Virus record (IMG/VR): IMGVR_UViG_3300023202_000247
Span: 62,001 to 126,000 of that record
Direction: 5' to 3' (one strand)
Length of the DNA stretch: 64,000 bases
The notes beneath the pieces were generated by a model, which made no database searches, was not told the DNA's origin, and saw nothing but the letters and a program-made list of their open reading frames with translations. Position numbers and translations under genes: made by a program. Positions 4,668-57,549 of this stretch are shown here, piece after piece (the first letter of the stretch is position 1; every line of letters begins with the position of its first letter).

Positions 4668-5098
4668 GAATGTTGAGAGATTATCACAGCTTTGATATGT
4701 TGGTACAGTGGCTACCATTTATCGTAGGACCAATTGTAGAGTTGTTCTTTCCAAAGTACCACACTCACATTTGGACGTTTATATTCGGATGGGTTGCTGT
4801 ATATGGTGTTCGTAACTTTGTTATGAAGCCTGTTTGGAGATGGCTTAATAACAAAACCGGAGTACCACCCCATCTAACCGTTTCATATCCCAAAAAGCTA
4901 CCGGTTGGAAACATGGCTACTTGTGCTACCTGGGAAGGCAAGGACGGCGGCATTGATGAAAATGATAAGATGCTTTACGTTTCATATCATGCACGCATTT
5001 TTACATCGAACTTGACCAGTAAATCAACCGTAGGTTTGGTTATGAAGTGGCTTGATGCATTGGAAAATGGTTGCGCCAAACTATCTGAGAAGCGATGA
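4628..5098 (+). CDS. hypothetical membrane protein
   Basis: two hydrophobic helices; coupled to next gene. Confidence 0.6.
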   Translation: MATVFQEFDLVQLRMLRDYHSFDMLVQWLPFIVGPIVELFFPKYHTHIWTFIFGWVAVYGVRNFVMKPVWRWLNNKTGVPPHLTVSYPKKLPVGNMATCATWEGKDGGIDENDKMLYVSYHARIFTSNLTSKSTVGLVMKWLDALENGCAKLSEKR

Positions 5099-5910
5099 GA
5101 CCAGTAATTTTACCACGCAAAGACCTTGATTGGGAAGACGAAGCAGAAGCTGCGGCAAAGTATTTCAACATACTTTATTACCGTCCACAAGTAATCCAAG
5201 ATAACTTGGTTATTGCTCGTTTCTCAGCTGTACCATTCTACAGAGAACAAGCTCTCGAGTATGAATATGTAGGTGCGCGTATGATTAACTCGTACGCTGA
5301 GCATCTATACATTGCAGACTTGCGCGAGTGGTATGCAGACTTGATGGAGTTTACTCCGAAGACGTGGACACAGCTTCATACGATTCCCGATGAAGGACCA
5401 TTCGTTCTCAAAGGGATCACGAATAGCAAAAAGTTTCTGTGGAAGACTCATATGTTTGCGCAGAATAAACAGGAAGCTATTCAGGTTCATTCACGTTTGA
5501 CGCAAGATTCGATGATTGCGTATCAAGATATCGTCATACGTGAGTATGTGCCTTTACATACATACATGACTGGATTGCAAGGCATGCCGGTCACCAAAGA
5601 GTTTCGGTTTTTCTTTTACAAGGGAAACCTTTTGAGCGGCGGATACTATTGGTCCAGTCACATGTACGACTTGGAGGATGCTGGTATCAAGCCTGACATT
5701 GTTGAGGTTCCACTTCCTTGGTTGATGGAGATTGCGCGCATAGTTGCAAAAAAAGCGACGTTCTTCGTGTTGGACGTTGCGCAAACCGAAAGTGGTGAAT
5801 GGATTTTGATCGAGGTTAATGACGGACAGCAATCCGGTTTGTCCGAGAATGACCCCGATGTTTTGTATAGAAATCTGAAAAAGTTCTTGCAGGAAGACGG
5901 ACACGTATGA
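5095..5910 (+). CDS. ATP-grasp domain protein (R2K-like)
   Basis: FVLKG, IREYVP, EFRFF, FVLDVA, WILIEVNDGQQSG motifs. Confidence 0.85.
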   Translation: MRPVILPRKDLDWEDEAEAAAKYFNILYYRPQVIQDNLVIARFSAVPFYREQALEYEYVGARMINSYAEHLYIADLREWYADLMEFTPKTWTQLHTIPDEGPFVLKGITNSKKFLWKTHMFAQNKQEAIQVHSRLTQDSMIAYQDIVIREYVPLHTYMTGLQGMPVTKEFRFFFYKGNLLSGGYYWSSHMYDLEDAGIKPDIVEVPLPWLMEIARIVAKKATFFVLDVAQTESGEWILIEVNDGQQSGLSENDPDVLYRNLKKFLQEDGHV

Positions 5911-6443
5911 TAACCTTGAAAAGCCCACCAAAGTTTCGAGACATTCCACCATTCATTCCATTCACTGGTTACACCGTAGATGTTACTTGGCAACATTTGC
6001 AAGAGTGGCTTGATGATGAAGAGAATAAGAATCTTGAACCTGACTTTCAAAGGGGACACGTTTGGACCGATGAAAAGCGTCAAGCGTATATTGAATTCTG
6101 TCTTCGTGGGGGAAATTCTGCAAACGATATCTATTGGAATTGTGAGAACTATGGTCGAGGAGGACAAGGAGAGCTAGTCCTAGTAGACGGAAAGCAACGT
6201 CTAACATCTGTTCTCATGTTTCTACAAGATAAAATAGCTGTTTTTGGTAAGCATCGTTACAGTGACTTTGTCGATCGTTTGGGCACTGGTACTAGACTAC
6301 ATATCAATATCAACAGCTTGAAGACACGAGCAGAAATTCTTCAGTGGTATCTTGATCTCAACACTGGTGGAGTTGTTCATACCAATGAAGAGATTGAAAA
6401 AGTTCGTCGCATGTTGAAAAAGGAGTTGAGTTCCAATGCATAA
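5907..6443 (+). CDS. DUF262 / ParB-like domain protein
   Basis: PDFQRGHVW, VDGKQRLTS, LNTGG motifs. Confidence 0.88.
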   Translation: MITLKSPPKFRDIPPFIPFTGYTVDVTWQHLQEWLDDEENKNLEPDFQRGHVWTDEKRQAYIEFCLRGGNSANDIYWNCENYGRGGQGELVLVDGKQRLTSVLMFLQDKIAVFGKHRYSDFVDRLGTGTRLHININSLKTRAEILQWYLDLNTGGVVHTNEEIEKVRRMLKKELSSNA

Positions 6444-7304: not shown

Positions 7305-7525
7305 AAAATGAAAAGATTAAACTCGGGCTGATCAAGCTGTTTCAGAAAGTTCTTGACAACAAGACTGATGATGTGCTACCATTGTTGAATAGTGTTGCAT
7401 CCGTAAAAGATGTATTGGACTGGTCAGCTCGCACAGTTGGTTACAAAGATGTTGACGAGTATGTAAAAGAACATGGCAAAGATGGTCTGGTTGCGATGTT
7501 GGAGTACAAACTAAAGGGTGAGTGA
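7301..7525 (+). CDS. hypothetical protein
   Basis: ATGA-coupled ORF directly upstream of cas12f-like gene. Confidence 0.6.
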   Translation: MKNEKIKLGLIKLFQKVLDNKTDDVLPLLNSVASVKDVLDWSARTVGYKDVDEYVKEHGKDGLVAMLEYKLKGE

Positions 7526-9003
7526 TGTCTGAAAAGCCTGAACCCATTGAAACCAAAGAAGAGAAAAGGAAGAAGAGTCGCAAGCGTCAAAAGAAAGTTA
7601 CCGACACTTCGCGCAAGAAGGCTAAGATTAAAAACATTGCCAGAGTAATAAAGATTGAACTGGCAAAGCCAATCGATAGTGTATTTCACTCCAAATCTAC
7701 TCCTGTCAGTTGGGACGAGGTTGGTCCCGAACTACGTCGACAGCGGAGCATCATGCACCGGCTTCTTAATTCAGCTGTAACCGAATGTGAATTGGCTCAG
7801 CGCGGTAACATCGATAAGCCCATTCAAACTGTTGTGTATCATGCTGTTAAAAAAGAGTTTAACAGTTTTGTAGAGTGGACGAGCAATCATAAGAATAAAG
7901 AAATTCGCGACAGGTATGAAGGCTTCGCATTGCCTGGCGGAACGTTTGCTGCTGTTAGTGGAATTGCTTATAAGCAATGGTCTACATGGAAGAAGGATAA
8001 GACTGGCAGTTCCAGTCTCCCGTCCTTTCGCAAGGGTGCGCCCATCTTCATTCGCAAACAAGAATGCGAGCTTGCCAAGGATGATGATATTGGAATTTAT
8101 CTAAAGCTGAAGTTGTTTCCCAACGGTGCAATTCGTTTTGCAATTCGTCCCAGCCGTGGAGATCATTTCAAAACGATTCGTGAAATCGTCGAATCTGATG
8201 GTTCTTGCTGGCAAGGTGATTGTAAAATCATCTTTGATGAAAACGCAAGGCGAAAGAATGGTGGAAAGGGTAAGTGGTTTGCGTTTCTAACCTACTACAC
8301 TCGCGCTCCTAGTCCCGCGGATGCTGATATGAAAAAGGCTTTGGTGCTCAATCGTGGACACCATTGTTTTCTGTACGCAATGACAACAACTGGTAAGTCA
8401 CACATTATCATGCGCGGCAGTGATGTGCGAGCTTACCGTAAACGTGTCAGTAAGCTTCGAGGTGAGTTTAAGGGTAATTTCTATGAAGCGGGAAGCGGTT
8501 CCCGTGGTCATGGAAAGATGCGTAAGTATCGAGAGTATGCAAAGTTTGGTAACAAAGAATCTAATTTCTTGAAGACCAAAAGTCAACAAGCATGGGCTCG
8601 AGTGGAAGAGATTATGAAGCGGGAAGGCTGTGGCACTGTGATTGTTGAAGATTACAGCGGTGCAGAGACTCGGTTTTTGCAGTGGCCATTGTTCGAATTC
8701 AAAAACCACGGTAAAAATATGTGTGAACGTAATGGTTTCAACATGCAAGAAACCAAAAGGGTCAGTGCTATTGCATGTCCACGCTGTGGTAGTGACGACC
8801 ATAAGAAATATATGAATCGAAATCTCATTTTTCATTGCAATGAATGTGGTTTCGAACGCCCATATGATTTCGTATCCACTTTCAACATGGGGTTGGCCGC
8901 CGGTGCTGACATGGGTTGCTTCCGATTTACCCCGGCAGAAACTAGAACTGATAGAGAAGAAAAAGCAAAGCTCGAAGCTGAAGCCGCGGAGCTAAAGAAA
9001 TGA
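7522..9003 (+). CDS. cas12f: Cas12f1/TnpB-family RNA-guided protein, predicted nuclease-dead (RuvC-I D to N)
   Basis: Colinear with AsCas12f1 as recalled: IELAKP..WDEVGPELR, SLPSFRK, KWFAFLTY, KALVLNRG (vs IMGIDLG), GSRGHGK, EGCGTVIVED, RFLQW, CPRCG..FHCNECGF..D. Confidence 0.85.
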   Translation: MMSEKPEPIETKEEKRKKSRKRQKKVTDTSRKKAKIKNIARVIKIELAKPIDSVFHSKSTPVSWDEVGPELRRQRSIMHRLLNSAVTECELAQRGNIDKPIQTVVYHAVKKEFNSFVEWTSNHKNKEIRDRYEGFALPGGTFAAVSGIAYKQWSTWKKDKTGSSSLPSFRKGAPIFIRKQECELAKDDDIGIYLKLKLFPNGAIRFAIRPSRGDHFKTIREIVESDGSCWQGDCKIIFDENARRKNGGKGKWFAFLTYYTRAPSPADADMKKALVLNRGHHCFLYAMTTTGKSHIIMRGSDVRAYRKRVSKLRGEFKGNFYEAGSGSRGHGKMRKYREYAKFGNKESNFLKTKSQQAWARVEEIMKREGCGTVIVEDYSGAETRFLQWPLFEFKNHGKNMCERNGFNMQETKRVSAIACPRCGSDDHKKYMNRNLIFHCNECGFERPYDFVSTFNMGLAAGADMGCFRFTPAETRTDREEKAKLEAEAAELKK

Positions 9004-9557
9004 ATTGCAATCATACTTTTAAGGTAAGTAGCTATACTACAAAGCATATTACTTATCGTTGTAGTAAATGTAATGAGCGGGCTGAGCGTTCCTCTTCCAA
9101 GGAAGAGGAAAAGTACATTAGCGAAAAACAAAATAGGAGACTTAATCCTCCCAAACATTATGTTTGGCACAAGTTTGCCAAAGCGTTTCAAAATGATGAT
9201 ATGTCTTGGAAAAAAGAAAATCTCAACAAGATGCATGTTATCAGTAAATGGGCAGAAAAATATCCAGAACACATCCGAATCATTCGCTGTGATGATTCCG
9301 TAAATTCAAGTTCAGTGATCATATTCATTGAGCACAAGTCTGAGCGTTCATATATGGGTACAACGATGTTGTGCGTGCCTCAGTGTAGTCCTGATCCACC
9401 AATTAGTATGTTTCTTTACCCCAACCATGTGGAGAATATGATTGCTGCGCTTCAAGAAATTGAAGTTCAAACTAGAACGATCAAAGAGATTGAAAATGCT
9501 GATTCTATAAAGGACAGCAAAGAAGTTAATGAAATGTTGTCGTATGAAAAATCTTGA
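9000..9557 (+). CDS. hypothetical protein with N-terminal Zn-ribbon
   Basis: CxH..CSKC; ATGA-coupled to cas12f-like gene. Confidence 0.65.
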   Translation: MNCNHTFKVSSYTTKHITYRCSKCNERAERSSSKEEEKYISEKQNRRLNPPKHYVWHKFAKAFQNDDMSWKKENLNKMHVISKWAEKYPEHIRIIRCDDSVNSSSVIIFIEHKSERSYMGTTMLCVPQCSPDPPISMFLYPNHVENMIAALQEIEVQTRTIKEIENADSIKDSKEVNEMLSYEKS

Positions 9558-9825
9558 GAAACTTGAAATGTTTTATGATAGGATTAAGAAATATGATTCA
9601 AAGTCTGAATACAACTTTTCAGAAATTGTTTCAACAGCTCAGTCTTTATTAGGCATTACAGATCAAGAATTGGCTGATACGTTTAGTGTAAGTCGGTCCA
9701 CTGTATATCGCTGGGCAACCTGTAGCAGTATGCCGTGCCTAGCTGTTAGAGATTCTTTCTTAAAGTGGTTATCAATGAATATTCAACACAGGCTGAACAG
9801 CCGGTCAACTGAAAAAAGTCCTTGA
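9544..9825 (+). CDS. XRE-family helix-turn-helix protein
   Basis: LGITDQELADTFSVSRSTVYRW. Confidence 0.8.
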   Translation: MKNLEKLEMFYDRIKKYDSKSEYNFSEIVSTAQSLLGITDQELADTFSVSRSTVYRWATCSSMPCLAVRDSFLKWLSMNIQHRLNSRSTEKSP

Positions 9826-9850
9826 CATTCAACTGCTTCTGAGTTAGATT
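9822..9850 (+). promoter_or_regulatory. sigma70-like promoter for the structured RNA
   Basis: TTGACA 9822-9827, 17-nt spacer, TAGATT 9845-9850. Confidence 0.7.
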
Positions 9851-9856
9851 GGCTTT

Positions 9857-10069
9857 CGTGATGAAGCCAGTATCACACAGCCTCTCACAAGTAGGGCAAA
9901 ACATCTCGCTAACGTTCCTCGGAACGATCGTCCGTAAGGACAGCTACGATACGCCGTTGGTATCCTTCGGGAAACCTGCGGAAAACAACGGGGTGACTGC
10001 ACACCCTAAGGCGAGTGTACCGAAAGTAAGGGGCTGTGTAATGCTGGCGTCACAAAAAGTATCGTAGCT
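9857..10069 (+). ncRNA. structured RNA, candidate tracr/omega-type guide scaffold for the dCas12f
   Basis: Long stem 9858-9885 with 10029-10053 (three G-U pairs favour + strand); hairpins with GUAA and cUUCGg loops; 11-bp pseudoknot agctacgatac 9942-9952 with gtatcgtagct 10059-10069. Confidence 0.7.
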
Positions 10070-10684
10070 AGATGCTCCGTTGGTTTGCAAAGCCTCAGAG
10101 CCAGCAGTGTGACGTTACTGCTTAAAATTTTTACAAAGGGATGCTGTGCTCTTACAGACCTCATCCTAAAGTATCGTAGCACAGTATGAAGTGTCGTGCA
10201 CAAATGCAGTAAGCGGTTGCTATGATGGGTTGGTTTGTAAAGATAATATAAGTATCGTAGCAGAAAGTGCAACTAGCAGGCGTTGGTTTGCAAAGGACGC
10301 TGTGCTCTTAAAAAGTCACAGACGATCTGTGTGTAGTGAAATCGGAGAAAAATGACCGAAAAAGAACTGAAACATTATGTTCAGAACAACCTGGGGGATG
10401 GTGGTTTCATTGAAAAATCCGAAGGATACTGCCTCATAGGCGAATTCAATGGTCCAGTTCGACATGTTTACGGATTCGGTAGAACATGGGCCCAAGCATA
10501 TGAATCCGTCTTCAAAAAAAATCTAAACTGATGCTTAATGCTGGCATCACAAAAAGAGGTCACAGACAAGTATCGTAGTTAGATGGAGCCTCAGTGGTAA
10601 CGCAGAACGTCTTCATAGATCAAATACAGTGACAGCCTCGTCTCAATTTTTACAAAGGATGCTGTGCTCCTAAAAGTCACAGAC
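10059..10684 (+). CRISPR. degenerate CRISPR-like array (motifs gtatcgtagc, gttggtttgcaaag, and hairpin repeat caaaggatgctgtgctcctaaaagtcacagac)
   Basis: gtatcgtag at 10059,10171,10252,10570; gttggtttgYaaag at 10079,10229,10282; hairpin repeat at 10134-10159,10291-10323,10653-10684, stub 10559-10567; irregular spacing. Confidence 0.5.
10352..10531 (+). CDS. 59-aa hypothetical protein inside the repeat region
   Basis: RBS ggag, MTEKELKHYVQNN...KKNLN*; below ORF-track cutoff. Confidence 0.6.
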   Translation: MTEKELKHYVQNNLGDGGFIEKSEGYCLIGEFNGPVRHVYGFGRTWAQAYESVFKKNLN

Positions 10685-10695
10685 AACAATTTACA

Positions 10696-10878
10696 ATGAG
10701 TACACTTCCTAGAGTTACTTTCAATACAGAAGATGGGCTAGAAAAGCACGGTAATGTGTTGCTTCGTCAGGAGCCGAACCTAATCGTGCATGTAAAGGAT
10801 GAACCAGAAGCTATTTGGCTTGTCCCAATTTCATCCTGCGTAAAGCAACAGGAGAAAAAGAAAAAGAAGAAGGCATGA
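10696..10878 (+). CDS. hypothetical protein
   Basis: ORF track. Confidence 0.55.
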   Translation: MSTLPRVTFNTEDGLEKHGNVLLRQEPNLIVHVKDEPEAIWLVPISSCVKQQEKKKKKKA

Positions 10879-11135
10879 AATATCTGCTATTAATAATAGC
10901 AGCATCAATTGTCAGTTGTACAGCACCTACCTCGTACGCTAGTCCGAGTGTAGGTGCTTGGCATTGGTGCCAAGAAACTTGTACCGAGCGCTCCAATAAC
11001 GGTGCTTGTACGAACTTTTACGTATCAGAGTGTGAGCGCTATGCTCATACATCTGAAGATGATGCCATTCAAATGGAAGAACAGGCATGCCTTGATAAAG
11101 GATATTCTGCTATTGATTGTGAATACTCACGATGA
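10875..11135 (+). CDS. Cys-rich putative lipoprotein
   Basis: MKYLLLIIAASIVSC signal/lipobox-like. Confidence 0.55.
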   Translation: MKYLLLIIAASIVSCTAPTSYASPSVGAWHWCQETCTERSNNGACTNFYVSECERYAHTSEDDAIQMEEQACLDKGYSAIDCEYSR

Positions 11136-11764
11136 ATGATAAATATATTAAGATAAAAGATGCGCGCGAGCGTAGAATAAAAAACAACCTGTGTATCACT
11201 TGTGGTTTGATTCCACCACGAAAAGATCGACGTATGTGTGTTGATTGTTCGGACAAGCGATTGAAATATGAGGCAGAGCTTCGCTTGCGTGCCACTGAAG
11301 AAAAACGTAAGAAGCGTAATGCTGTTAACAGAAAGCTCAATAGAACTTTTATCGAGCGCGGCATATGTCCAAATTGTTACAAGCGTCCATTGGAAGAGGG
11401 TAAAAAATCTTGTTCCAAATGCCTAAAGGGTGCACGAGACAGGGCTAAATATCCTTTGCGTTTGCCAAGAGGGGGTATGTCATTGTTCATGGGCGAGTAT
11501 AAAGCTTTAACCCAAGAACAGTTTCATAATTTTTACAAGGCTGTCGAACGTAAAGGCAGCGCTGCAAACTTCGAATCATACCTATCCGAACTAGAGTCCA
11601 AAGTCTACCGTGCCCGCATCGATGGCACATCTATGGAAGCAATTGCTAAAGACATTGGATATACTAGACAAGGTGTAGCGTATATCGAAAGAAACATTGC
11701 TAAGAAGTTTGTCGGAAAAGTTGGCAAACTCAAACTCTCCGATTTGAGGAACAATGGAACTTGA
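11132..11764 (+). CDS. Zn-finger plus sigma70 region-4-like HTH protein (similar architecture to 2509..3015)
   Basis: four CxxC pairs; LSELESKVY..SMEAIAKDIGYTRQGVAYIE. Confidence 0.7.
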   Translation: MNDKYIKIKDARERRIKNNLCITCGLIPPRKDRRMCVDCSDKRLKYEAELRLRATEEKRKKRNAVNRKLNRTFIERGICPNCYKRPLEEGKKSCSKCLKGARDRAKYPLRLPRGGMSLFMGEYKALTQEQFHNFYKAVERKGSAANFESYLSELESKVYRARIDGTSMEAIAKDIGYTRQGVAYIERNIAKKFVGKVGKLKLSDLRNNGT

Positions 11765-11822
11765 TCAGTTGTAGTAATGAAATGTGTTTCCGCAGAAGAT
11801 CCTAGCTAGAAGAGGTTTAAAC

Positions 11823-12260
11823 ATGGAAAAGCTAAGATTAGAGATTGACTGTGATGATGACAAGATGTATTACAAGTGGGATACGGATGAATTGCATAAT
11901 CCATATGGTCCAGCAGTTGAATTTGTAAGTGGAACTAAAGAATGGTGGGTAAACGGAAATCGTCACCGAGAAGATGGTCCAGCAATTGAATATGCAAATG
12001 GACATAAAGAGTGGTATCTAAACGGTAAACGTCATCGGGAAGATGGTCCAGCAATTGAATATGCAAATGGATCTAGAGAATGGTATCTAAACGGTAAACG
12101 TCATCGTGAAGATGGTCCAGCTTTTGAACATGCATATGGATCTAAAGAATGGTGGGTAAACGGTGTCGAATTTACAGAGGAAGAATTCAACAGTCGTCAC
12201 TCTTGTACCAGCAAGATTGTTAAGATTGACGGAAAACGCTACAAGTTAGAAGAGATTTGA
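11823..12260 (+). CDS. HREDGPA-repeat (MORN-like beta-hairpin) protein, copy 1
   Basis: MEKLRLEID cap, 23-aa HREDGPA repeats, IDGKRYKLEE cap. Confidence 0.85.
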   Translation: MEKLRLEIDCDDDKMYYKWDTDELHNPYGPAVEFVSGTKEWWVNGNRHREDGPAIEYANGHKEWYLNGKRHREDGPAIEYANGSREWYLNGKRHREDGPAFEHAYGSKEWWVNGVEFTEEEFNSRHSCTSKIVKIDGKRYKLEEI

Positions 12261-12767: not shown

Positions 12768-13208
12768 ATGGAAAAGCTACGAGTAGAGATTGACTGTCAT
12801 GGTAACAAGATGTATTACAAGTGGGATACGGATGAACTGCATAATCCATATGGTCCAGCTGTTGAAGGTGCAGATGGAGATAAAGAATGGTATCTAAACG
12901 ATAAGCTTCACCGAGAAGATGGCCCTGCTATTGAAGGTGCAGATGGAGATAAAGAATGGTATCTAAACGATAAGCTTCACAGAGAAGATGGTCCAGCAGT
13001 TGAATATGCATATGGACATAAAGAGTGGTATGTAAACGGTAAACGTCATCGTGAGGGTGGTCCTGCTGTTGAACATGCAGATGGATATAAAGAATGGTAT
13101 GTAAATGGTACCAAACTGACAGAAGAAGAGTTCAACAGTCGTCACTCATTTTGTACCAGCAAGATTGTAGAGATTGACGGAAAACGTTACAAGCTAGAAG
13201 AAGTTTGA
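12768..13208 (+). CDS. HREDGPA-repeat protein, copy 3
   Basis: same architecture. Confidence 0.85.
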   Translation: MEKLRVEIDCHGNKMYYKWDTDELHNPYGPAVEGADGDKEWYLNDKLHREDGPAIEGADGDKEWYLNDKLHREDGPAVEYAYGHKEWYVNGKRHREGGPAVEHADGYKEWYVNGTKLTEEEFNSRHSFCTSKIVEIDGKRYKLEEV

Positions 13209-13211
13209 AAG

Positions 13212-13652
13212 ATGGAAAAGCTAAGATTAGAGATTGACTGTGATGGTACAAAAAAGTATTACAAGTGGGATACGGATGAGTATCATAATCCATATGGTCC
13301 AGCTATTGAATATGCAAATGGATATAAAGAGTGGCGGGTAAACGGTAAACGTCATCGTGAAGATGGCCCTGCTATTGAAGGTGTAAATGGAACTAAATTT
13401 TGGTATCTAAACGGTAAACGTCATCGTGAAGATGGTCCAGCAATTGAATTTGTAAATGGATCTAGAGAATGGTGGGTAAACGGTAAACGTCATCGTGAAG
13501 ATGGTCCAGCTTTTGAACATGCAGATGGATATAAAGAATGGTGGATAAATGATACCAAACTTACAGAGGCAGAGTTCAACAATCGTCACTCATCTTGTAC
13601 CGGAAAGATTGTTAAGATTGACGGAAAACGTTACAAGCTAGAAGAAGTTTGA
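13212..13652 (+). CDS. HREDGPA-repeat protein, copy 4
   Basis: same architecture. Confidence 0.85.
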   Translation: MEKLRLEIDCDGTKKYYKWDTDEYHNPYGPAIEYANGYKEWRVNGKRHREDGPAIEGVNGTKFWYLNGKRHREDGPAIEFVNGSREWWVNGKRHREDGPAFEHADGYKEWWINDTKLTEAEFNNRHSSCTGKIVKIDGKRYKLEEV

Positions 13653-13655
13653 AAG

Positions 13656-14096
13656 ATGGAAAAGCTAAGATTAGAGATTGACCATCATGGTACAAAAAAA
13701 TATTACAAGTGGGATACGAATGAACTGCATAATCCATATGGTCCAGCTGTTGAATATGCAAATGGATATAAAGCTTGGTGGATAAACGGTAAACGTCATC
13801 GTGAAGATGGCCCTGCTATTGAAAGTGTAAATGGAACTAAATTTTGGTATCTAAACAATAAGCGTCATCGTGAAGATGGTCCAGCTATTGAACATGCAGA
13901 TGGACATAAATCTTGGTATCTAAACGATAAACTTCATCGTGAAGATGGTCCAGCTTTTGAACATGCAGATGGATATAAAGAATGGTATGTAAATGGTACC
14001 AAACTGACAGAAGAAGAGTTCAACAGTCGTCACTCATCTTGTACCAGCAAGATTGTGGAGATTGACGGAAAACGTTACAAGCTAGAAGAAGTTTGA
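13656..14096 (+). CDS. HREDGPA-repeat protein, copy 5
   Basis: same architecture. Confidence 0.85.
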   Translation: MEKLRLEIDHHGTKKYYKWDTNELHNPYGPAVEYANGYKAWWINGKRHREDGPAIESVNGTKFWYLNNKRHREDGPAIEHADGHKSWYLNDKLHREDGPAFEHADGYKEWYVNGTKLTEEEFNSRHSSCTSKIVEIDGKRYKLEEV

Positions 14097-14099
14097 AAG

Positions 14100-14498
14100 A
14101 TGGAAAAGCTAAGATTAGAGATTGACTGTGATGGTACAAAAAAGTATTACAAGTGGGATACGTATGAACTGCATAATCCATATGGTCCAGCTATTGAATA
14201 TGCAGATGGAGATAAATTTTGGTATGAATTTGCAGATGGAGATAAAGCTTGGTATCTAAACGGCAAACGTCATCGTGAGGATGGCCCAGCTTTTAAATAT
14301 GCAAATGGACATAAAGAATGGTATGTAAATGGTAAACTTCATCGTGAAGATGGTCCAGCTATTGAATATGCAGATGGAGATAAAGCTTGGTGGATAAATG
14401 ATACCAAACTTACAGAGGAAGAATTCAATAGTCGTCACTCTTGTGCTGGTAAAGTTGTGGAGATTGATGGAAAACGTTACAAACTAGAAGAAGTTTGA
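14100..14498 (+). CDS. HREDGPA-repeat protein, copy 6 (internal in-frame deletion)
   Basis: KFWY-EFADG junction lacks part of one repeat. Confidence 0.85.
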   Translation: MEKLRLEIDCDGTKKYYKWDTYELHNPYGPAIEYADGDKFWYEFADGDKAWYLNGKRHREDGPAFKYANGHKEWYVNGKLHREDGPAIEYADGDKAWWINDTKLTEEEFNSRHSCAGKVVEIDGKRYKLEEV

Positions 14499-17262: not shown

Positions 17263-17751
17263 TTGTTTGTTGGGAGTGAAAGAATGATTCGTTTGATAAA
17301 TATCAAAGTAGTTGCTCATTACCCTTATGATTGGGGATTTGATGAAACGCTTGCAAAAACGGCATGTAAATATCTAGAAGGATTTTTACACAACCATTTC
17401 AGCGATAGATCGCTTTTTACTGAGAGTGAGTCTAAAAGATTGATCGGAGCCATCAAAACTGGCGTGATGATGAATAGTGTAATTTCTGGTTATGACATTT
17501 ATCTTTCTCATGAGATTTATACTTCCCTTAGAGGAAAGTTAAATCTAGATTTGCTGAGTTTTCACATGAACGGTTTCATCGAGGGAGCTTTTTATTGTCA
17601 TCATATTCAACCATATCCGGAGGGTCCCGATAATAAGGACTCTGTCGAATACAAAGCTTGGTTAAGGCTAGAAGAAGCTAAGAGAGATTTGGAAGATGCT
17701 TATGAGAACTTCAATATAGAAAAATTACCCGTAAGTATTGAAGACCAATAA
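17263..17751 (+). CDS. hypothetical protein
   Basis: ORF track. Confidence 0.6.
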   Translation: MFVGSERMIRLINIKVVAHYPYDWGFDETLAKTACKYLEGFLHNHFSDRSLFTESESKRLIGAIKTGVMMNSVISGYDIYLSHEIYTSLRGKLNLDLLSFHMNGFIEGAFYCHHIQPYPEGPDNKDSVEYKAWLRLEEAKRDLEDAYENFNIEKLPVSIEDQ

Positions 17752-17887
17752 TCTTCAACAGTTTACAGTATCGTAGCACAGAACGAAATCCATAATGCAG
17801 AGAACGTGAAGCATTGCTTCGCAAAAGGAGAATTGGTCAACCATATAGGTGATATATCTATGTGGTATGACAGTACTTCCGAATACC

Positions 17888-18163: not shown

Positions 18164-19327
18164 TTGATGACAAAAATTAGTGATATAAAATGGGGAAAGT
18201 ATAAAAATTATGAAGGCCCTGTTTATTACGGCAGTGTAAAATATAAATTGCCATCAAACCCATCTAGCGATGACAAGCTGTTAGCCGTTACTACCGCGAC
18301 TGAGGGTGGAACACTTGATGCAGTTCAGAGCTATGACTCTGGAATAATCAGTGTGGGTTTGATTCAACTAATTGAGGCAAGTTACTTTCTTGCCTCAAAG
18401 TTGATTGGATATACTATCTCAAATGAGCCCGGTTTGATAAAGCCTTTGCAACCAGCGCTTGATGCTTCAGATACCATTTTTAAAAACAATGGAAGACGTT
18501 GGAGATTTTTTGTTCGCGGTGATGAAGTTGACGAACTTCCAGAACAACGGCGACTTTTTTTATTAAACTCTAATGGCTATATAGGCTCTTGGGATGATGA
18601 GTCAAAAAAGCATTCAAAGTTGTGGATAGCTTCGATGTCTGATTTTTTAGCCCAAGATCAAGCTGTAAAATTACAAACAACATATGTTGCATCTCGTTTA
18701 AGGTCATTTGTGATGCCCAAAGTTAAGCCTTTTCTTTGGGATGGTAAACCTGATGACACTTGGGTTGGTGCAACTAGGGCGGCCTATGTTAGTTTTTCAG
18801 CTAATAATCCGCTAAGAGCAAGCCAAAGTTTAGATAAAGCTATAGCCGATTCCTCAGCTTACTCCAAGTGGAGCAAAGATTGGTGTATCAATATTATCAA
18901 ATGGTTGACGTTTGGTTCGGGAATTACAATCTATCCACATAGATATAATAAAATTAGACCTGTTATAGAGCGTATCTATAATGTGGATCTTCCAGATTTT
19001 GCTGAAGAGTTGAAGTCTCTCGACCTTGGTGGTCAAGGTATGTGGGACCCTCGAGAAATTCAACAGGCTCTTTCAGACTTGGGATACGATATCGGACCAA
19101 GCGGTGTTGATGGTAAATGGGGACCAAAATCAACAGAAGCTATGCTGGACTTTCAAAGAAAGCATGGTATCGTCAGCGAAACTTTAGGCTATCCAGATAA
19201 GAAAACTCGAGCCGTTCTAATCATCATGAGAGATGAACAGCTTAGAGAACCAACGATTGATCAGCTTGCATCTTATGCGCAAGGGCTCGGTATAGATTTG
19301 GCGAGAGATGAAATGTGGAATGAATAA
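18164..19327 (+). CDS. putative endolysin with C-terminal peptidoglycan-binding domain
   Basis: TEGG..YD..SVGLIQ lysozyme-like N-terminus; IQQALSDLGY..VDGKWGPKSTEAMLDFQ (PG_binding_1). Confidence 0.8.
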   Translation: MMTKISDIKWGKYKNYEGPVYYGSVKYKLPSNPSSDDKLLAVTTATEGGTLDAVQSYDSGIISVGLIQLIEASYFLASKLIGYTISNEPGLIKPLQPALDASDTIFKNNGRRWRFFVRGDEVDELPEQRRLFLLNSNGYIGSWDDESKKHSKLWIASMSDFLAQDQAVKLQTTYVASRLRSFVMPKVKPFLWDGKPDDTWVGATRAAYVSFSANNPLRASQSLDKAIADSSAYSKWSKDWCINIIKWLTFGSGITIYPHRYNKIRPVIERIYNVDLPDFAEELKSLDLGGQGMWDPREIQQALSDLGYDIGPSGVDGKWGPKSTEAMLDFQRKHGIVSETLGYPDKKTRAVLIIMRDEQLREPTIDQLASYAQGLGIDLARDEMWNE

Positions 19328-25245: not shown

Positions 25246-25318
25246 GGGCCATTAGCTCAGCGGTTAGAGCATTCGCCTCATAAGCGACTGGTCGTAGGTT
25301 CGAATCCTACATGGCCCA
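25246..25318 (+). tRNA. tRNA-CAT, probably tRNA-Ile2 (lysidine); no encoded CCA
   Basis: cloverleaf GGGCCAT/ATGGCCC, anticodon loop CTCATAA, GGTTCGAATCC; C4:G69 and C5:G68 (TilS determinants); upstream TTGACG/TATAAT. Confidence 0.9.
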
Positions 25319-26706: not shown

Positions 26707-27420
26707 ATGGAAATGATTAAGTATCCCAAGACTCCAAGGTTGACAAAATCATTAGGAGTTTATGATGATAACTATGAGGTTGTTGTCGAAGAAAAGATTG
26801 ACGGCGCTAACTGCGCCGTTTCTTTTATTGGTGATAAACTCACACTTCAAAGTCGCGGTCACATTTTAACCGGCGGCAAGCGAGAGTTTTTATTTAAGCG
26901 TCTTTGGCCATGGGCTTACGAACGTCTCAATATGCTACGATACATACTGGGTGAACGATATGTTTTATTCGGTGAATGGATGTATGCTAAGAACAAAATG
27001 TATTATGATAATCTTCCGGATTACTTTATAGCATTTGATATCTGGGATAAACACAACAATTTCTTTTTGAATAGTGATATTTGGCGAGAGATGGTTGCAG
27101 GTTTCGATGTTGAAACTGTGCATCTCATAGCACGTGGAAGTGCAAACAAGATGAATAATTTTGCCCAATACATCACAAAAACAATATATAAATCAGGTAC
27201 TTGGAAAGATGAATATGAACAAAAGCTTCTTTATCTTCATGAATTTTATGATGAGTCTGAGACAGATATGTCCGACTTGATGGAAGGCATTTACATCAAG
27301 ATTGAGGATGATGAAAAAGTTGTCGACCGTTATAAGTTGATAAGAGATGATTTTGAAAAGATTCAAACCGATGATGCCAAGTGGGGTCAACGTCCCATAT
27401 TTGAGAATGGTATTAGATGA
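26707..27420 (+). CDS. ATP-dependent RNA ligase family protein
   Basis: KYPKTPRL, EEKIDGAN, QSRGH, FGEW, FIAFDI, MEGIYIK. Confidence 0.88.
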   Translation: MEMIKYPKTPRLTKSLGVYDDNYEVVVEEKIDGANCAVSFIGDKLTLQSRGHILTGGKREFLFKRLWPWAYERLNMLRYILGERYVLFGEWMYAKNKMYYDNLPDYFIAFDIWDKHNNFFLNSDIWREMVAGFDVETVHLIARGSANKMNNFAQYITKTIYKSGTWKDEYEQKLLYLHEFYDESETDMSDLMEGIYIKIEDDEKVVDRYKLIRDDFEKIQTDDAKWGQRPIFENGIR

Positions 27421-46127: not shown

Positions 46128-46209
46128 GATGAAGAAACTCAAAGGATGCTGTGCTCCTAAAAGTCACAGACAAACTCAAAGGATGCTGTGCTCCTAAAAG
46201 TCACAGACA
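46128..46209 (+). repeat. two spacer-less tandem 37-nt hairpin repeats (left flank)
   Basis: aaactcaaaggatgctgtgctcctaaaagtcacagac at 46135-46171 and 46172-46208. Confidence 0.9.
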
Positions 46210-46242
46210 AATGATCCGTTACATGCCTGAGGTAAAAGAACC

Positions 46243-46707: not shown

Positions 46708-46789
46708 GATGAAGAAACTCAAAGGATGCTGTGCTCCTAAAAGTCACAGACAAACTCAAAGGATGCTGTGCTCCTAAAAGTCACAGACA
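46708..46789 (+). repeat. two spacer-less tandem 37-nt hairpin repeats (right flank)
   Basis: identical to 46128-46209; units 46715-46751 and 46752-46788. Confidence 0.9.
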
Positions 46790-46926
46790 CACAGTATGTA
46801 AACATCGGTGATGCAACTCCTCAAAAGCTTGCCAAGCTCGCAGAGTTTGTAAGCAAATCTGTTTCGGCTCAGAGTCAGAATGTTAGTTCCGGCAAAGCTG
46901 CTCCAGTTGCATCAATCAAGTTCTAA
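46789..46926 (+). pseudogene. orphan 3' end of a probable vWA/TerY-like gene
   Basis: TQYVNIGDATPQKLAKLAEFVSKSVSAQSQ..IKF* with no convincing start; followed by terminator. Confidence 0.5.
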
Positions 46927-54989: not shown

Positions 54990-55068
54990 CAAAGGATGCT
55001 ACGTTTCTTAAAACTGTAGACTATCGCGAGATGCAATAAAGGATGCTGTGCTCCTAAAAGTCACAGAC
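54990..55068 (+). CRISPR. mini-array: repeat-16 nt-repeat
   Basis: caaaggatgctacgtttcttaaaactgtagac 54990-55021, tatcgcgagatgcaat, aaaggatgctgtgctcctaaaagtcacagac 55038-55068. Confidence 0.55.
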
Positions 55069-55096
55069 CCCCGTCACACGTTGACGCTCATGATTT

Positions 55097-55146: not shown

Positions 55147-57549
55147 ATGTCATTTAAATATCAAGTTACTAAAATCAGCGATAATCATTATGTATTGGAA
55201 AAGATGAAAGATATGAAATGCGATGTACATGCATATCTTTCAGAAAAGCTATATAATCTCTCAGAAGAGGGATTGTGGACTCAAGCATATAATTCTGCAT
55301 CACACGAAGGTGTAAAGGGTGTGTACCTAATGCCTGACTGTTTGTCTGATGATACTGAGGTTTTAACGCCGCAAGGATTTACAAAAATATCAGAATTGTC
55401 TTCAGATACAAAAATTGCAAATGTTATAATCACGGATAAGGGTGCTCAAGGGGTTTATTGGAAAGAGCCAAAAGTAATTATACATAGAGAATTAAGAGAA
55501 AATGAAAGGGTTTTCTCACACACTTTTCAAAGATTAAACAAAAGTATTTTAACAACAGAAGGGCATAGGCACCCTTTTACTGTTAATGAATGTACAACTG
55601 ATATTATCAGCAAAGAAATGCCTAAAGAAGCCTTCGTTAAAAATTTTATTTGGTATGGAAATGATTCTGAAACTCGTCAGCGTATAAAACTTACAGATGA
55701 TGAAATAAAACTTATTACATGGATTGTTGGCGATGGAAATATAACACATAATAAAAATAACGCTAATAAAAGAATTAGGTTTGGGTTCAAAAAAATTAGA
55801 AAAATTCAGCGAGTAACTTTTCTTCTTAATGAAATTGGTCTAAATTATACTGTTTGTAAGTCTGACAAACAAACTGAAATTTATATAAACACAAGCTCTA
55901 GTCAAAAATTTATTGATATTGTTGGAGATAATAAAGAATATCCAAAGAATTGGATATCTGATTTGAATCAGAATCAAGCATCTATGATGATAGATGAAAT
56001 GCTAATGATAGATGGAGACTGGGAAAATCATAATAAAATGGGCAGTAGTGTCATATATACATCTAGAAAAACTGATGCTGATTTTATCAGCAGCGTTGTT
56101 TCTAAGTATATTGGGTGTGCAAACATTAAGTTTGATGAAAAAAGATATGATAATGGATGCTGGAAGATATCTATAATTAAAGGTGAAAATCTGCAAAAGT
56201 CATCTAAAAATGGTTTACATAATACTAAAGTTATAACCAATGTATCTAGCTATACAGGAAAGGTTGTTTGCATTACCTGCGACTCTGGGTATTTTATAGC
56301 TCGTCAAAATGGACTTACGTTTGTAACTGGTAATTGCCACCTCGGCTATGGCATTCCAGTTGGTGGTGTTGTTGTTACAGATGACGTTATCATTCAGGCT
56401 GGATCTGGATATGATATCTCGTGCGGTGTAGTGTATATGAAAGTTCCGAAGTTGCATGCTTCGGACATTGCAAGTTGGCAAAAGCGAGAGAGCTGGGTGC
56501 GTGAAGTATCCAAGCGTATTGCTTTGGGCGTTGGCTCTCATCGTCCGAGTAAGATGAAAGAGTTTCAATCTAAAGATACTCATGAAATCTTGCGTCACGG
56601 AGCAAAGGCAATCGGAATCAATTCTGACTTTTGTGAGCGACAGTTCATTCCGATTCGTGGCAACATCGACTTTGAAAAGATTGAAAAGGCTTGGGGCAAA
56701 GCTACTGGTCAGCTTGGATCGGTTGGTGGTGGCAATCATTTCGTAGAAATGCAAGTCGATGAAAATGATGGAAGTGTTTGGGTAATGATCCATTGCGGTT
56801 CTCGTGGTTATGGTTGGCAAACAGCTAATCATTTCTTTTACGAGGGCGCAAAGCATCGTGGCCTTCCCATGAATAGAAGAGAGTCCAGTTGGCTTCGTAT
56901 CGACGAGGATCTTGGCAAAGAATATTGGGCTTACCATAACAGTGCTGCAAACTATGCGGTGGCTAATCGTCACATCATCGTAGAGGGCATTCAGGAAGCT
57001 TTGCGCAAGGTTTGGAAAACTGAAGGCGAGCTTTACTACGAAATCAGTCACAACCTCGTTCAAGAGGAAACGTTGGTATTACCTGATGGTTCGCATACCA
57101 AAGGTTTCGTTCATCGTAAAGGAGCGACGAGAGCTTTTCCAGCTGGGCATCCCGATCTCATCGGAACCAAGTGGGAGAAGACTGGTCATCCATGTCTAAT
57201 TCCGGGCAGTATGTATGACGGAGCTGCAATCCTTTTTCCATTGGAAGGTGCTTATCAAACCGCGTGCTCAGTGAATCATGGTTCAGGTCGCCTCATGGCT
57301 AGAGGTCAGGCAAAGAAAAAGCTAAAGCCCAAGCAGCAGTTTATCGATGACCAGATGCGCACAGTGAAGCGTAAGCTGGGCGGCATCGAAGTCAGAGGTA
57401 TCGTAGGTAATACCAAGAAAACTCCACTTGATGAATGCGGTCACGTTTACAAGAATTTGGATGATGTGCTTGGAGTTCTAGAAGACGAAGGTATTGCAAA
57501 GGTAAAGCATAGACTGTACCCAGTTGCAAACCTAAAGGGTACCGACTGA
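55147..57549 (+). CDS. rtcB: RtcB RNA ligase interrupted by an intein
   Basis: MPD/CHLGYGIPVGG, GYDISCGV, GGGNHF, HCGSRG, SHN, HRKGAT, PGSM, HGSGR, YKNL. Confidence 0.95.
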   Translation: MSFKYQVTKISDNHYVLEKMKDMKCDVHAYLSEKLYNLSEEGLWTQAYNSASHEGVKGVYLMPDCLSDDTEVLTPQGFTKISELSSDTKIANVIITDKGAQGVYWKEPKVIIHRELRENERVFSHTFQRLNKSILTTEGHRHPFTVNECTTDIISKEMPKEAFVKNFIWYGNDSETRQRIKLTDDEIKLITWIVGDGNITHNKNNANKRIRFGFKKIRKIQRVTFLLNEIGLNYTVCKSDKQTEIYINTSSSQKFIDIVGDNKEYPKNWISDLNQNQASMMIDEMLMIDGDWENHNKMGSSVIYTSRKTDADFISSVVSKYIGCANIKFDEKRYDNGCWKISIIKGENLQKSSKNGLHNTKVITNVSSYTGKVVCITCDSGYFIARQNGLTFVTGNCHLGYGIPVGGVVVTDDVIIQAGSGYDISCGVVYMKVPKLHASDIASWQKRESWVREVSKRIALGVGSHRPSKMKEFQSKDTHEILRHGAKAIGINSDFCERQFIPIRGNIDFEKIEKAWGKATGQLGSVGGGNHFVEMQVDENDGSVWVMIHCGSRGYGWQTANHFFYEGAKHRGLPMNRRESSWLRIDEDLGKEYWAYHNSAANYAVANRHIIVEGIQEALRKVWKTEGELYYEISHNLVQEETLVLPDGSHTKGFVHRKGATRAFPAGHPDLIGTKWEKTGHPCLIPGSMYDGAAILFPLEGAYQTACSVNHGSGRLMARGQAKKKLKPKQQFIDDQMRTVKRKLGGIEVRGIVGNTKKTPLDECGHVYKNLDDVLGVLEDEGIAKVKHRLYPVANLKGTD
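55339..56334 (+). mobile_element. intein (332 aa) with LAGLIDADG-type endonuclease
   Basis: C1 CLSDDTEVLT, TTEGHRH, WIVGDG and MIDGD, FVTGN/C; AT-richer than exteins. Confidence 0.92.

Follow-up and report, generated by a model that had tools for sequence, protein, structure and literature searches.

A 64,000-nt stretch of viral DNA (bases 62001-126000 of the IMG/VR virus record IMGVR_UViG_3300023202_000247; hereafter the window, in which window coordinate = genome coordinate - 62000) was analysed, and the RNA element at 9857-10053 is proposed to be the guide-RNA scaffold of the Cas12f-like protein encoded by the adjacent open reading frame (ORF) 7522-9003, with an internal segment (the anti-tag) that pairs with a short repeated sequence (the tag, GTATCGTAG). 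We consider this assignment probable. In Cas12f and TnpB complexes, the nucleotides immediately 5′ of the guide typically pair with a segment inside the scaffold, and the layout seen here was found to recur beside homologous genes in unrelated phage contigs: the RNA has a long stem, and a short tag repeated on the same strand is matched by a complementary stretch in its interior. The whole record comprises 321 kb and is estimated to be 75% complete, which identifies its source as a jumbo phage; both the scaffold RNA and the effector gene are single-copy in this genome. Coordinates of the features are collected in Table 1.

Structure and predicted ends of the RNA

The region 9857-10069 was folded to a minimum free energy (MFE) of -85.5 kcal/mol against a mean of -59.4 kcal/mol for shuffled sequences (z -5.97; 0 of 200 shuffles as good). 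A terminal stem of 24 bp with small bulges (9858-9862/10049-10053, 9866-9873/10041-10048, and 9875-9885/10029-10039) is prolonged by an irregular helix to 9905-9910/10010-10015, which closes a multiloop. In the MFE fold, the multiloop hairpins span 9913-9926 (pairs 9913-9917/9922-9926), 9930-9941 (pairs 9930-9933/9938-9941, GUAA loop), 9954-9981, which contains the smaller hairpin 9963-9965/9970-9972 with a UUCG loop, and 9990-10007. The sequence features listed in a preliminary description of this DNA, which had been made by a model from the letters alone, were all present, and the fold check proposed there yielded the stable structure given above; the hairpin 9990-9995/10002-10007 was found besides. 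The cgttcc/ggaacg hairpin of that description exists, but only 5 bp are possible in it, around a 4-nt loop. A hit to an unrelated known RNA family, which would have spoken against a guide RNA, was not obtained for the RNA: the Rfam covariance models gave nothing at gathering score in the window or in the related loci L012, L014, L017, and L020 described below, and the sole match in a permissive Rfam scan of 9700-10800 was a chance snoRNA (E 3.5) outside the scaffold RNA.

From the position of a sigma-70-like promoter, the transcription start is predicted to lie near 9857, and the promoter and a terminator-like hairpin would bracket a primary transcript of likely ~270 nt.

Tag, anti-tag, and tag copies

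The anti-tag AGCTACGATAC is unpaired in the MFE fold and lies within the multiloop. Its exact complementarity over 11 nt to 10059-10069 was confirmed as first described, and an energy between about -16 and -18 kcal/mol was estimated for the tag:anti-tag duplex, with z -4.7 relative to shuffled tags. Pairing between the tag in cis and 9942-9952 is expected, from their complementarity, to close a pseudoknot.

The tag GTATCGTAG gave 8 matches in the window including the anti-copy (expected, 0.16 ± 0.47). The matches lie on the + strand at 10059, 10171, 10252, 10570, 17768, and 57398 and on the - strand at 26943; the recurrence at 10171, 10252, 10570, and 17768 had already been pointed out, and the copies at 57398 (+) and 26943 (-) are probably chance copies inside ORFs. 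Two further + strand copies are located just upstream of the window (genome 46232 and 57804). In the whole record, seven + strand tags preceded by A or AA were counted within 34 kb (genome 46232, 57804, 72059, 72171, 72252, 72570, and 79768). When complementary copies of each scaffold 8-mer were counted elsewhere in the locus (the 8-mer test), the anti-tag was the top word in the window, with 7 same-strand complementary copies outside the scaffold (mean, 0.54) and 0 on the opposite strand.

Tag copy 4 carries the variant GTATCGTAGT, whose C-to-T change still pairs with the anti-tag through a G.U wobble. It is preceded, 13 nt ahead, by a 21-nt copy (10536-10556) of the scaffold 3′ stem strand 10039-10059, in which one change makes a U.G pair with 9858-9862 into U-A; this unit could therefore pair with both the scaffold 5′ strand and the anti-tag. 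A unit identical to it is present at genome 57794-57845. Between the otherwise identical tag units, a 34-nt segment (10601-10634 vs genome 57834-57867, L011) is inverted, being 32/34 identical as the reverse complement, and no flanking inverted repeats were noticed at this segment.

The Cas12f-like effector and its clade

The 493-aa effector was compared with PDB sequences by phmmer, and OsCas12f (9nzq, E 1.2e-18) was matched, with AsCas12f, SpCas12f1, and others at E 1e-14 to 1e-15. An AlphaFold model of the effector (pLDDT 84) was submitted to Foldseek, and the top 12 matches were all Cas12f (E 4e-24 to 2e-17; best, 8j12 with E 3.7e-24 and TM 0.55-0.65; TM over the twelve, 0.5-0.65); the dCas12f structure 9n9c was matched at E 1e-16 (9n9m was also among the matches) and TnpB at E 1e-11 to 1e-12. 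This model places the effector closer to Cas12f than to TnpB. In the HMMER alignment, the RuvC-I Asp of OsCas12f (GVDMG) is aligned with Asn276 (LVLNRG) of the effector, which retains RuvC-II Glu375, RuvC-III Asp448, and a CxxC...CxxC zinc ribbon. The complete RuvC D-E-D triad of a type V-F effector is thus absent, and, the RuvC-I Asp being lost, canonical nuclease activity is improbable for this protein.

A profile search of 1.84 billion representatives returned 2376 relatives, 143 of them at E<1e-30. In the alignment of the 137 full-length top matches, the RuvC-I column is occupied by H in 88, R in 25, N in 15, D in 7, and K in 2, that is, by His, Arg, or Asn in 128/137 and by H/R/N/K in 130/137, with the RuvC-II E kept in 110 and the RuvC-III D in 125. 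According to this alignment, the effector belongs to a sizeable Cas12f-like clade without the canonical first catalytic residue. The clade is mostly phage-borne, and every locus fetched was phage-like, as marked by many small ORFs, a DnaB helicase, Sipho_Gp157, a CI/Cro-type helix-turn-helix (HTH) pair, or an integrase; its members, where named in databases at all, are called 'IS605 OrfB family transposase' or DUF1610 zinc-ribbon protein. Since the RuvC-I aspartate is lost in the effector and in nearly the whole clade, the complex more likely binds DNA than cuts it. A His or Asn at RuvC-I could conceivably still bind metal, and the argument for binding only is strongest for the Arg variants.

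Recurrence of the layout at related loci

Relatives were sought with the sequence itself. The blastn search of window 9000-12000 against the phage GenBank collection gave zero matches, close relatives of the 493-aa protein or of the scaffold RNA were not found in IMG/VR, a single truncated locus was recovered by a metagenome scan, and searching the window RNA sequence in the loci of the clade gave only a chance match, inside a real gene. Because the window RNA had no detectable sequence relatives, it was tested whether the layout recurs.

Adjacent long-stem RNAs were found at six other clade loci (L012, L014, L017, L020, L023, and L024; z -7.6 to -10.8). At L012 (P0023), a 149-nt RNA with a 34-bp terminal stem (z -7.8) lies in the 5′ leader of the gene, and its interior ACCCATCCTG complements CAGGATGGGT, which is present in 3 copies downstream. 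At L020 (P0007), a 189-nt RNA has a 26-bp stem whose arms are separated by 137 nt, as they are in the window, and UCCACAUC complements GGATGTGGAGTTTGGAGG, of which 11 full copies are distributed on both sides at 33-61-nt spacing; the 8-nt tag core has 13 complementary copies. [quoted passage not shown] At L024 (P0016), a 180-nt RNA directly follows the gene, and in it CGCACGACC is complementary to short copies upstream of the gene and to the 3′ portion of a 36-nt repeat (at least 10 units). The flanks of L017 and L023 are too short for tags to be judged.

The 8-mer test was informative for five loci, including the window, and the top word was the anti-tag in 5/5. Same-strand copies numbered 7 in the window, 3 in L012, 16 in L014, 13 in L020, and 14 in L024, against background means of 0.2-0.5 and 0-2 copies on the opposite strand. 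The tags vary among the loci (GTATCGTAG, CAGGATGGGT, CAGGATGAG, GATGTGGA, and GGTCGTGCG), with corresponding variation in the anti-tags; L012 and L014 are distinguished by two compensatory changes, which affect both sides of the tag/anti-tag pairing. The scaffolds of five relatives share three core hairpins by RNAalifold, with 8/20 pairs compensatory. A tag in cis follows the terminal stem by 3-7 nt in three loci, namely the window, L020 (7 nt), and L017 (3 nt), and L012 and L014 have tags in trans only; this distribution fits both a single-guide RNA (sgRNA) formed in cis and a tracrRNA (trans-activating CRISPR RNA) used in trans.

Clusters of CRISPR-repeat 3′ ends were observed beside the Cas12f-like gene at L015:5766-6096, L015:8052-9020, L024:4663-4970, and L020:950-1612; the copies share one strand, the intervals between them are uneven and in many cases very short (16-60 nt), and they resemble mini-arrays or binding-site arrays. 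Candidate scaffold regions in L006 and L018 were rejected as not structured, as was the anti-repeat of L014 at 524-542, which lies outside any structured RNA. A duplicated structured element of ~150 nt is present at L022 instead. At L023:204-2853, a phage-type tyrosine integrase is encoded immediately upstream of the clade member, with the scaffold-like RNA after the gene; this fits the integrase association reported for inactivated TnpB in PMC10691335.

Table 1. Features of the scaffold RNA locus in the window (window coordinates unless stated otherwise)
Feature	Position	Strand	Remarks
Cas12f-like effector gene, 493 aa	7522..9003	+	ends 854 nt before the RNA
ORF, 185 aa, between effector gene and RNA	9000..9557	+	no Pfam or PHROG match
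Helix-turn-helix protein, 98 aa, CI/Xre-like	9529..9825	+	Pfam PF07022, E 2.9e-5; several HTH families
Sigma-70-like promoter (predicted)	9822..9850	+	TTGACA-17-TAGATT; 10/12 consensus matches
Scaffold RNA (proposed)	9857..10053	+	terminal stem, then multiloop with four hairpins
Anti-tag (anti-repeat) AGCTACGATAC	9942..9952	+	exact reverse complement of 10059-10069
A5 linker and cis tag GTATCGTAGCT	10054..10069	+	pairing with 9942-9952 would close a pseudoknot
Candidate guide segment of the cis RNA	10070..10102	+	assigned by position only
Intrinsic-terminator-like hairpin and T-run	10103..10131	+	predicted from sequence
Tag copy 2, GTATCGTAGC	10171..10180	+	preceded by degenerate 36-nt repeat at 10127-10159
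Tag copy 3	10252..10261	+	followed by 36-nt repeat copy 10287-10323 and ORF 10352-10531
Tag copy 4 unit	10536..10579	+	stem-strand copy 10536-10556, then GGTCACAGAC, then GTATCGTAGT at 10570-10579
Tag copy 5	17768..17777	+	in 412-nt gap between ORFs 17263-17751 and 18164-19327
Repeat variant copies, window	10127-10159, 10287-10323, 10646-10684, ~46135-46215, ~46715-46795, ~55032-55075		
Repeat variant copies, genome coordinates	32458, 34363, 44154, 57889, 57965, 171967		

Proposed mechanism

In the proposed mechanism, 9857-10131 would encode the guide RNA of the protein from ORF 7522-9003. Its first ~197 nt would form the scaffold (long terminal stem and four-hairpin multiloop), followed by the A5 linker, and the 11-nt tag GUAUCGUAGCU would fold back onto the unpaired anti-tag in the multiloop. 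The resulting pseudoknot would leave the ~14-30 nt that follow in the position of a 3′ guide, an arrangement known from Cas12f sgRNAs, TnpB omega RNAs, and dCas12f guide RNAs (gRNAs). The cis tag of the window, L020, and L017 would thus make a natural single guide. The other same-strand tag copies head short units that could dock on the same anti-tag in trans, in the manner of a tracrRNA and CRISPR RNAs (crRNAs), and the tag-only units would draw on this scaffold in trans, as would the full arrays of L015 and L024 on theirs. The complex would be more likely to control transcription by DNA binding, or to silence a competitor, than to cut. Our confidence in trans use and in a binding-only function is lower than that in the scaffold assignment.

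A wider and decidedly speculative extension, which we put forward with considerable doubt, is that the phage-borne clade with substituted RuvC-I uses one scaffold RNA together with 10-18-nt repeat tags scattered in early-gene leaders and arrays, by which tagged phage transcripts become guides or targets of an RNA-guided DNA binder. If this were true, it would amount to a programmable circuit for phage gene expression or competitor silencing that works without adaptation genes or nuclease.

Candidate guides and points against the assignment

Several observations weigh against a guide-RNA scaffold. The window RNA could not be aligned with the scaffolds of the relatives by MAFFT/RNAalifold, so that the parallel is one of layout and not of sequence; a comparable RNA was not found within the fetched flanks of the L002/L006 group and L018; and in L015 many tags stand at intervals that leave no room for guides. 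The scaffold RNA is separated from the effector gene by two ORFs. The pairing of 10-11 bp is shorter than the usual repeat:anti-repeat duplex, and the candidate cis guide 10070-10102 contains a fragment of the 5′ half of a 36-nt repeat. Since such repeat fragments occur both inside this guide and between the tags, some tag units may be relics.

No target or protospacer-adjacent motif (PAM) for the candidate guides was found in the 321-kb record, in which a few 13-14-mer matches at internal offsets, about the number expected by chance, were obtained. Exact 20-mers of the U2/U6 and U4 guides had no match in the genome-contig collection, nor did those of five guide patterns in the viral-contig collection; the first two 20-mer patterns included 6 nt possibly belonging to the repeat. 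Three units share TAGATG (6 nt) after a variable C/T following the tag, including the start of 10070-10102, and this motif may still be part of the repeat; by analogy with L015 and L024, in which 7-8 conserved nt follow the paired part of the repeat, the guide of the window may begin ~7 nt after GTATCGTAG. As guides may be as short as 14 nt, the absence of targets says little. On balance, the original idea of a Cas12f/TnpB-type scaffold is supported in part, and it gains from the Cas12f homologue 854 nt upstream and from the recurrence of the layout.

Alternative explanations

A rather unlikely, though still sizeable, alternative is that the anti-tag itself is the guide and that the GTATCGTAG sites are its targets, either as DNA (operator-like) or as mRNA leaders (in the manner of small RNAs), for the regulation of downstream phage genes; the RNA would then act with or without the protein, and in the cis tag it would have a competing or autoinhibitory partner. 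Such a role would suit the placement of the tags in intergenic leaders upstream of ORFs, always in sense orientation, with two of the three L012 tags abutting start codons and a tag in a related strain (see below) lying 35 nt ahead of the ATG of ORF 10352. The tag clusters of L015 and L020, spaced too tightly for guides, are like binding-site arrays, and at L017 an internal strand is repeated in the tail, both being complementary to one anti-segment, which is suggestive of strand exchange. In Cas12f and TnpB complexes, however, it is the 3′ end that serves as the guide, while the equivalent of the anti-tag is engaged in pairing inside the scaffold, and 10 nt is short for DNA targeting. Moreover, in L015 and L024 the tag plainly forms the 3′ portion of a CRISPR repeat, and diverse 36-nt spacers come after it, which is the signature of a crRNA handle and not of a target.

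It appears improbable that the RNA and tags are unrelated to the Cas12f-like gene and form a stand-alone phage noncoding RNA, for example, an RNA anti-CRISPR or sgRNA mimic against a host Cas12f-type system, or a regulator of the Cas12m-like system of the same phage described below. Phage sgRNA mimics and RNA anti-CRISPRs do exist (10.64898/2026.06.01.729453; 10.64898/2026.06.03.729762), copies of the 36-nt repeat of the Cas12m type alternate with the tags, and two ORFs separate the RNA from the effector gene. Nevertheless, RNA and gene occur together at seven clade loci, the other six without a Cas12m gene in the fetched flanks, and the 36-nt repeat pairs with the scaffold no better than chance (z 0.1 and -0.4). 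Scarcely credible is a small protein gene with repeats that are promoter or terminator debris. An open frame does cross the element (ORF 9849-10067, 72 aa, TTG start; or 66 aa from an alternative ATG at 9869), and its stop is the TAG inside the tag, but a Shine-Dalgarno sequence is absent before either start, the structure is extreme (z -6), the scaffolds of the relatives have no common ORF (L017 has no + strand ORF at all), and the relation between tag and anti-tag would be left without explanation.

A related strain

Among the sequencing runs listed for this DNA there was none of RNA; DNA runs do contain the sequence, and a related strain was found in runs X5 and X6. Its scaffold shows 4 differences in 188 nt, and the flanking genes show 54/880 and 56/880 (~6%); because some neighbouring ORFs are also only 3% diverged, this conservation of the scaffold is suggestive and not decisive. 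Everything after 10057 is rearranged, a 36-nt repeat copy replaces the sigma-70-like promoter of the scaffold (joint 9848->10655), and the strain carries units composed of a repeat end, a short leader, the tag, and TTAGATGG.

The Cas12m-like system and the interleaved repeat

Upstream of the window, genome 41906-45380 (L010:11907-15380) encodes a 671-aa Cas12m homologue (PDB 23vw, E 1.2e-24), with a CRISPR array of ~12 repeats GTAACAAAGGATGCTACGCTCCTTAAAGTTGTAGAC directly downstream (genome 44.0-45.4 kb); a small ORF is embedded between two parts of this array. The phage therefore carries two type V systems with effectors that likely bind rather than cut. No regular array of the effector's own repeats is located beside the Cas12f-like gene, the window having only irregularly spaced 10-11-nt tags.

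The element containing AAAGGATGCTGTGCTCCTAAAAGTCACAGAC is a variant of the 36-nt repeat of the Cas12m-side array, in which the stem is CUGUG/CACAG instead of CUACG/UGUAG, a compensatory change. This promoter-like repeat was rejected as the effector's own repeat, being a variant of the Cas12m-array repeat with chance-level pairing to the scaffold. The variants, solitary or paired, lie directly upstream of many ORFs and between tags; they contain TTTACA-N17-TAAAAG, and one of them stands in for the scaffold promoter in the related strain, so that they may provide the tagged units with promoters or processing sites. Their interleaving with the tags prompts the question whether the two type V systems, both probably of the binding type, engage in cross-talk.

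Comparison with known systems

The effector shares its fold with the type V-F Cas12f proteins, of which AsCas12f, OsCas12f, SpCas12f1, and CnCas12f1 are closest. Both have large, multi-stem scaffolds, here of ~200 nt and thus somewhat larger than gRNAs of 129-156 nt (PMC13186708). In type V-F guide RNAs, nucleotides that derive from the repeat and lie 5′ of the guide are paired with a segment inside the scaffold, and the same is proposed here, where an anti-repeat is present as an exact complement of 11 nt. The relatives L015 and L024 have regular 36-nt-repeat arrays, whereas the window has none. Unlike type V-F Cas12f, the present effector has lost the RuvC-I Asp and is carried by a jumbo phage, and its scaffold and first guide are predicted to form one natural transcript.

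Inactivated relatives of Cas12f are also known from the dCas12f-sigmaE system (Hoffmann et al., Nature 2026), in which a separate tracrRNA is not used (PMC13472631) and a single gRNA carries a 14-nt 3′ guide (10.1101/2025.06.10.658880). The system described here resembles it in the probably inactivated Cas12f relative and in the association with an HTH gene, and the layout of scaffold plus short 3′ guide fits, with RNA ends that are predicted. The dCas12f-sigmaE proteins have a C-terminal truncation, whereas the effector here retains RuvC-II, RuvC-III, and the zinc ribbon and changes RuvC-I; the operonic extracytoplasmic function (ECF) sigma factor with a C-terminal extension has no counterpart among the neighbours here; and dCas12f-sigmaE is encoded on Bacteroidetes chromosomes, in contrast to a phage with several tagged units.

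With TnpB omega RNAs and TldR guide RNAs, the proposed RNA shares the joining of scaffold and 3′ guide in one molecule. The omega RNA overlaps the 3′ end of tnpB and ends at the transposon right end, whereas the RNA here is downstream of and separate from the gene, with its own predicted promoter, and TnpB systems are mobile or multi-copy and often accompanied by TnpA, whereas the present system is single-copy, with no TnpA found among the neighbours. TldRs are RNA-guided repressors that derive from TnpB, lack nuclease activity, and are in many cases carried by phages (Wiegand et al. 2023/2024, 10.1101/2023.11.30.569447); their guides match a promoter of a host or phage gene. The effector here has lost its RuvC-I residue but groups with Cas12f and not TnpB, and no promoter target was found in the 321-kb record.

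Near Cas12f1 and V-U40-44, tracrRNAs joined to half of a repeat have been described, as have arrays that are irregular and omega-like (Altae-Tran et al. 2023, PMC10691335), and the layout here resembles the evolutionary route outlined in that study. The study also reports altered catalytic sites in Cas12f-like branches and association with HTH proteins and phage integrases; the sections considered describe rearrangements of RuvC-II and RuvC-III and no clade with His, Arg, or Asn at RuvC-I, and the present clade could not be placed in its tree.

If confirmed, the system would add a phage-encoded, probably binding-only branch to the Cas12f/TnpB-derived regulators (TldR, dCas12f-sigmaE, Cas12m, and Cas12k). 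It would be unusual in the repeat handle of only ~10 nt and in the natural fusion of the first guide to the scaffold, and would provide a compact protein (~490 aa) with a defined natural single-guide design. The clade comprises hundreds of representatives at 50% clustering, and recognition of its partner RNA would make many unexplained phage genes testable.

Neighbouring genes and other observations

The genes around the scaffold RNA are all on the + strand. Among the ten ORFs between 5095 and 11764, cas1, cas2, and cas4 were not found by Pfam/PHROG scan, and neither a sigma domain nor a transposase was found in the neighbouring ORFs; an upstream 199-aa ORF considered as a sigma factor was rejected, having no detectable similarity to anything. 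The 185-aa ORF 9000-9557 shows no similarity to the ORFs that occupy the corresponding place in L006 or L017. As in the window, homologues in L002, L006, and L018 have HTH genes in their flanks.

An R2K-clade ATP-grasp protein (PF14243, E 6e-21) followed by a protein with a GmrSD N-terminal domain (PF03235, E 9e-12) is encoded at window 5095-6443. On the Cas12m side, a run of ORFs built from 69-nt tandem repeats (L010:8575-11255) may encode a repeat protein family, and a protein with a microbial-type PARG catalytic domain (PF10021, E 4e-28) is encoded nearby at L010:5259-6518. Elsewhere in the window, four paralogous ORFs (146, 146, 146, and 132 aa) are arranged in tandem, head to tail, at 12768-14498, and a tRNA gene is located at 25246-25318 (Rfam RF00005, 72.9 bits).

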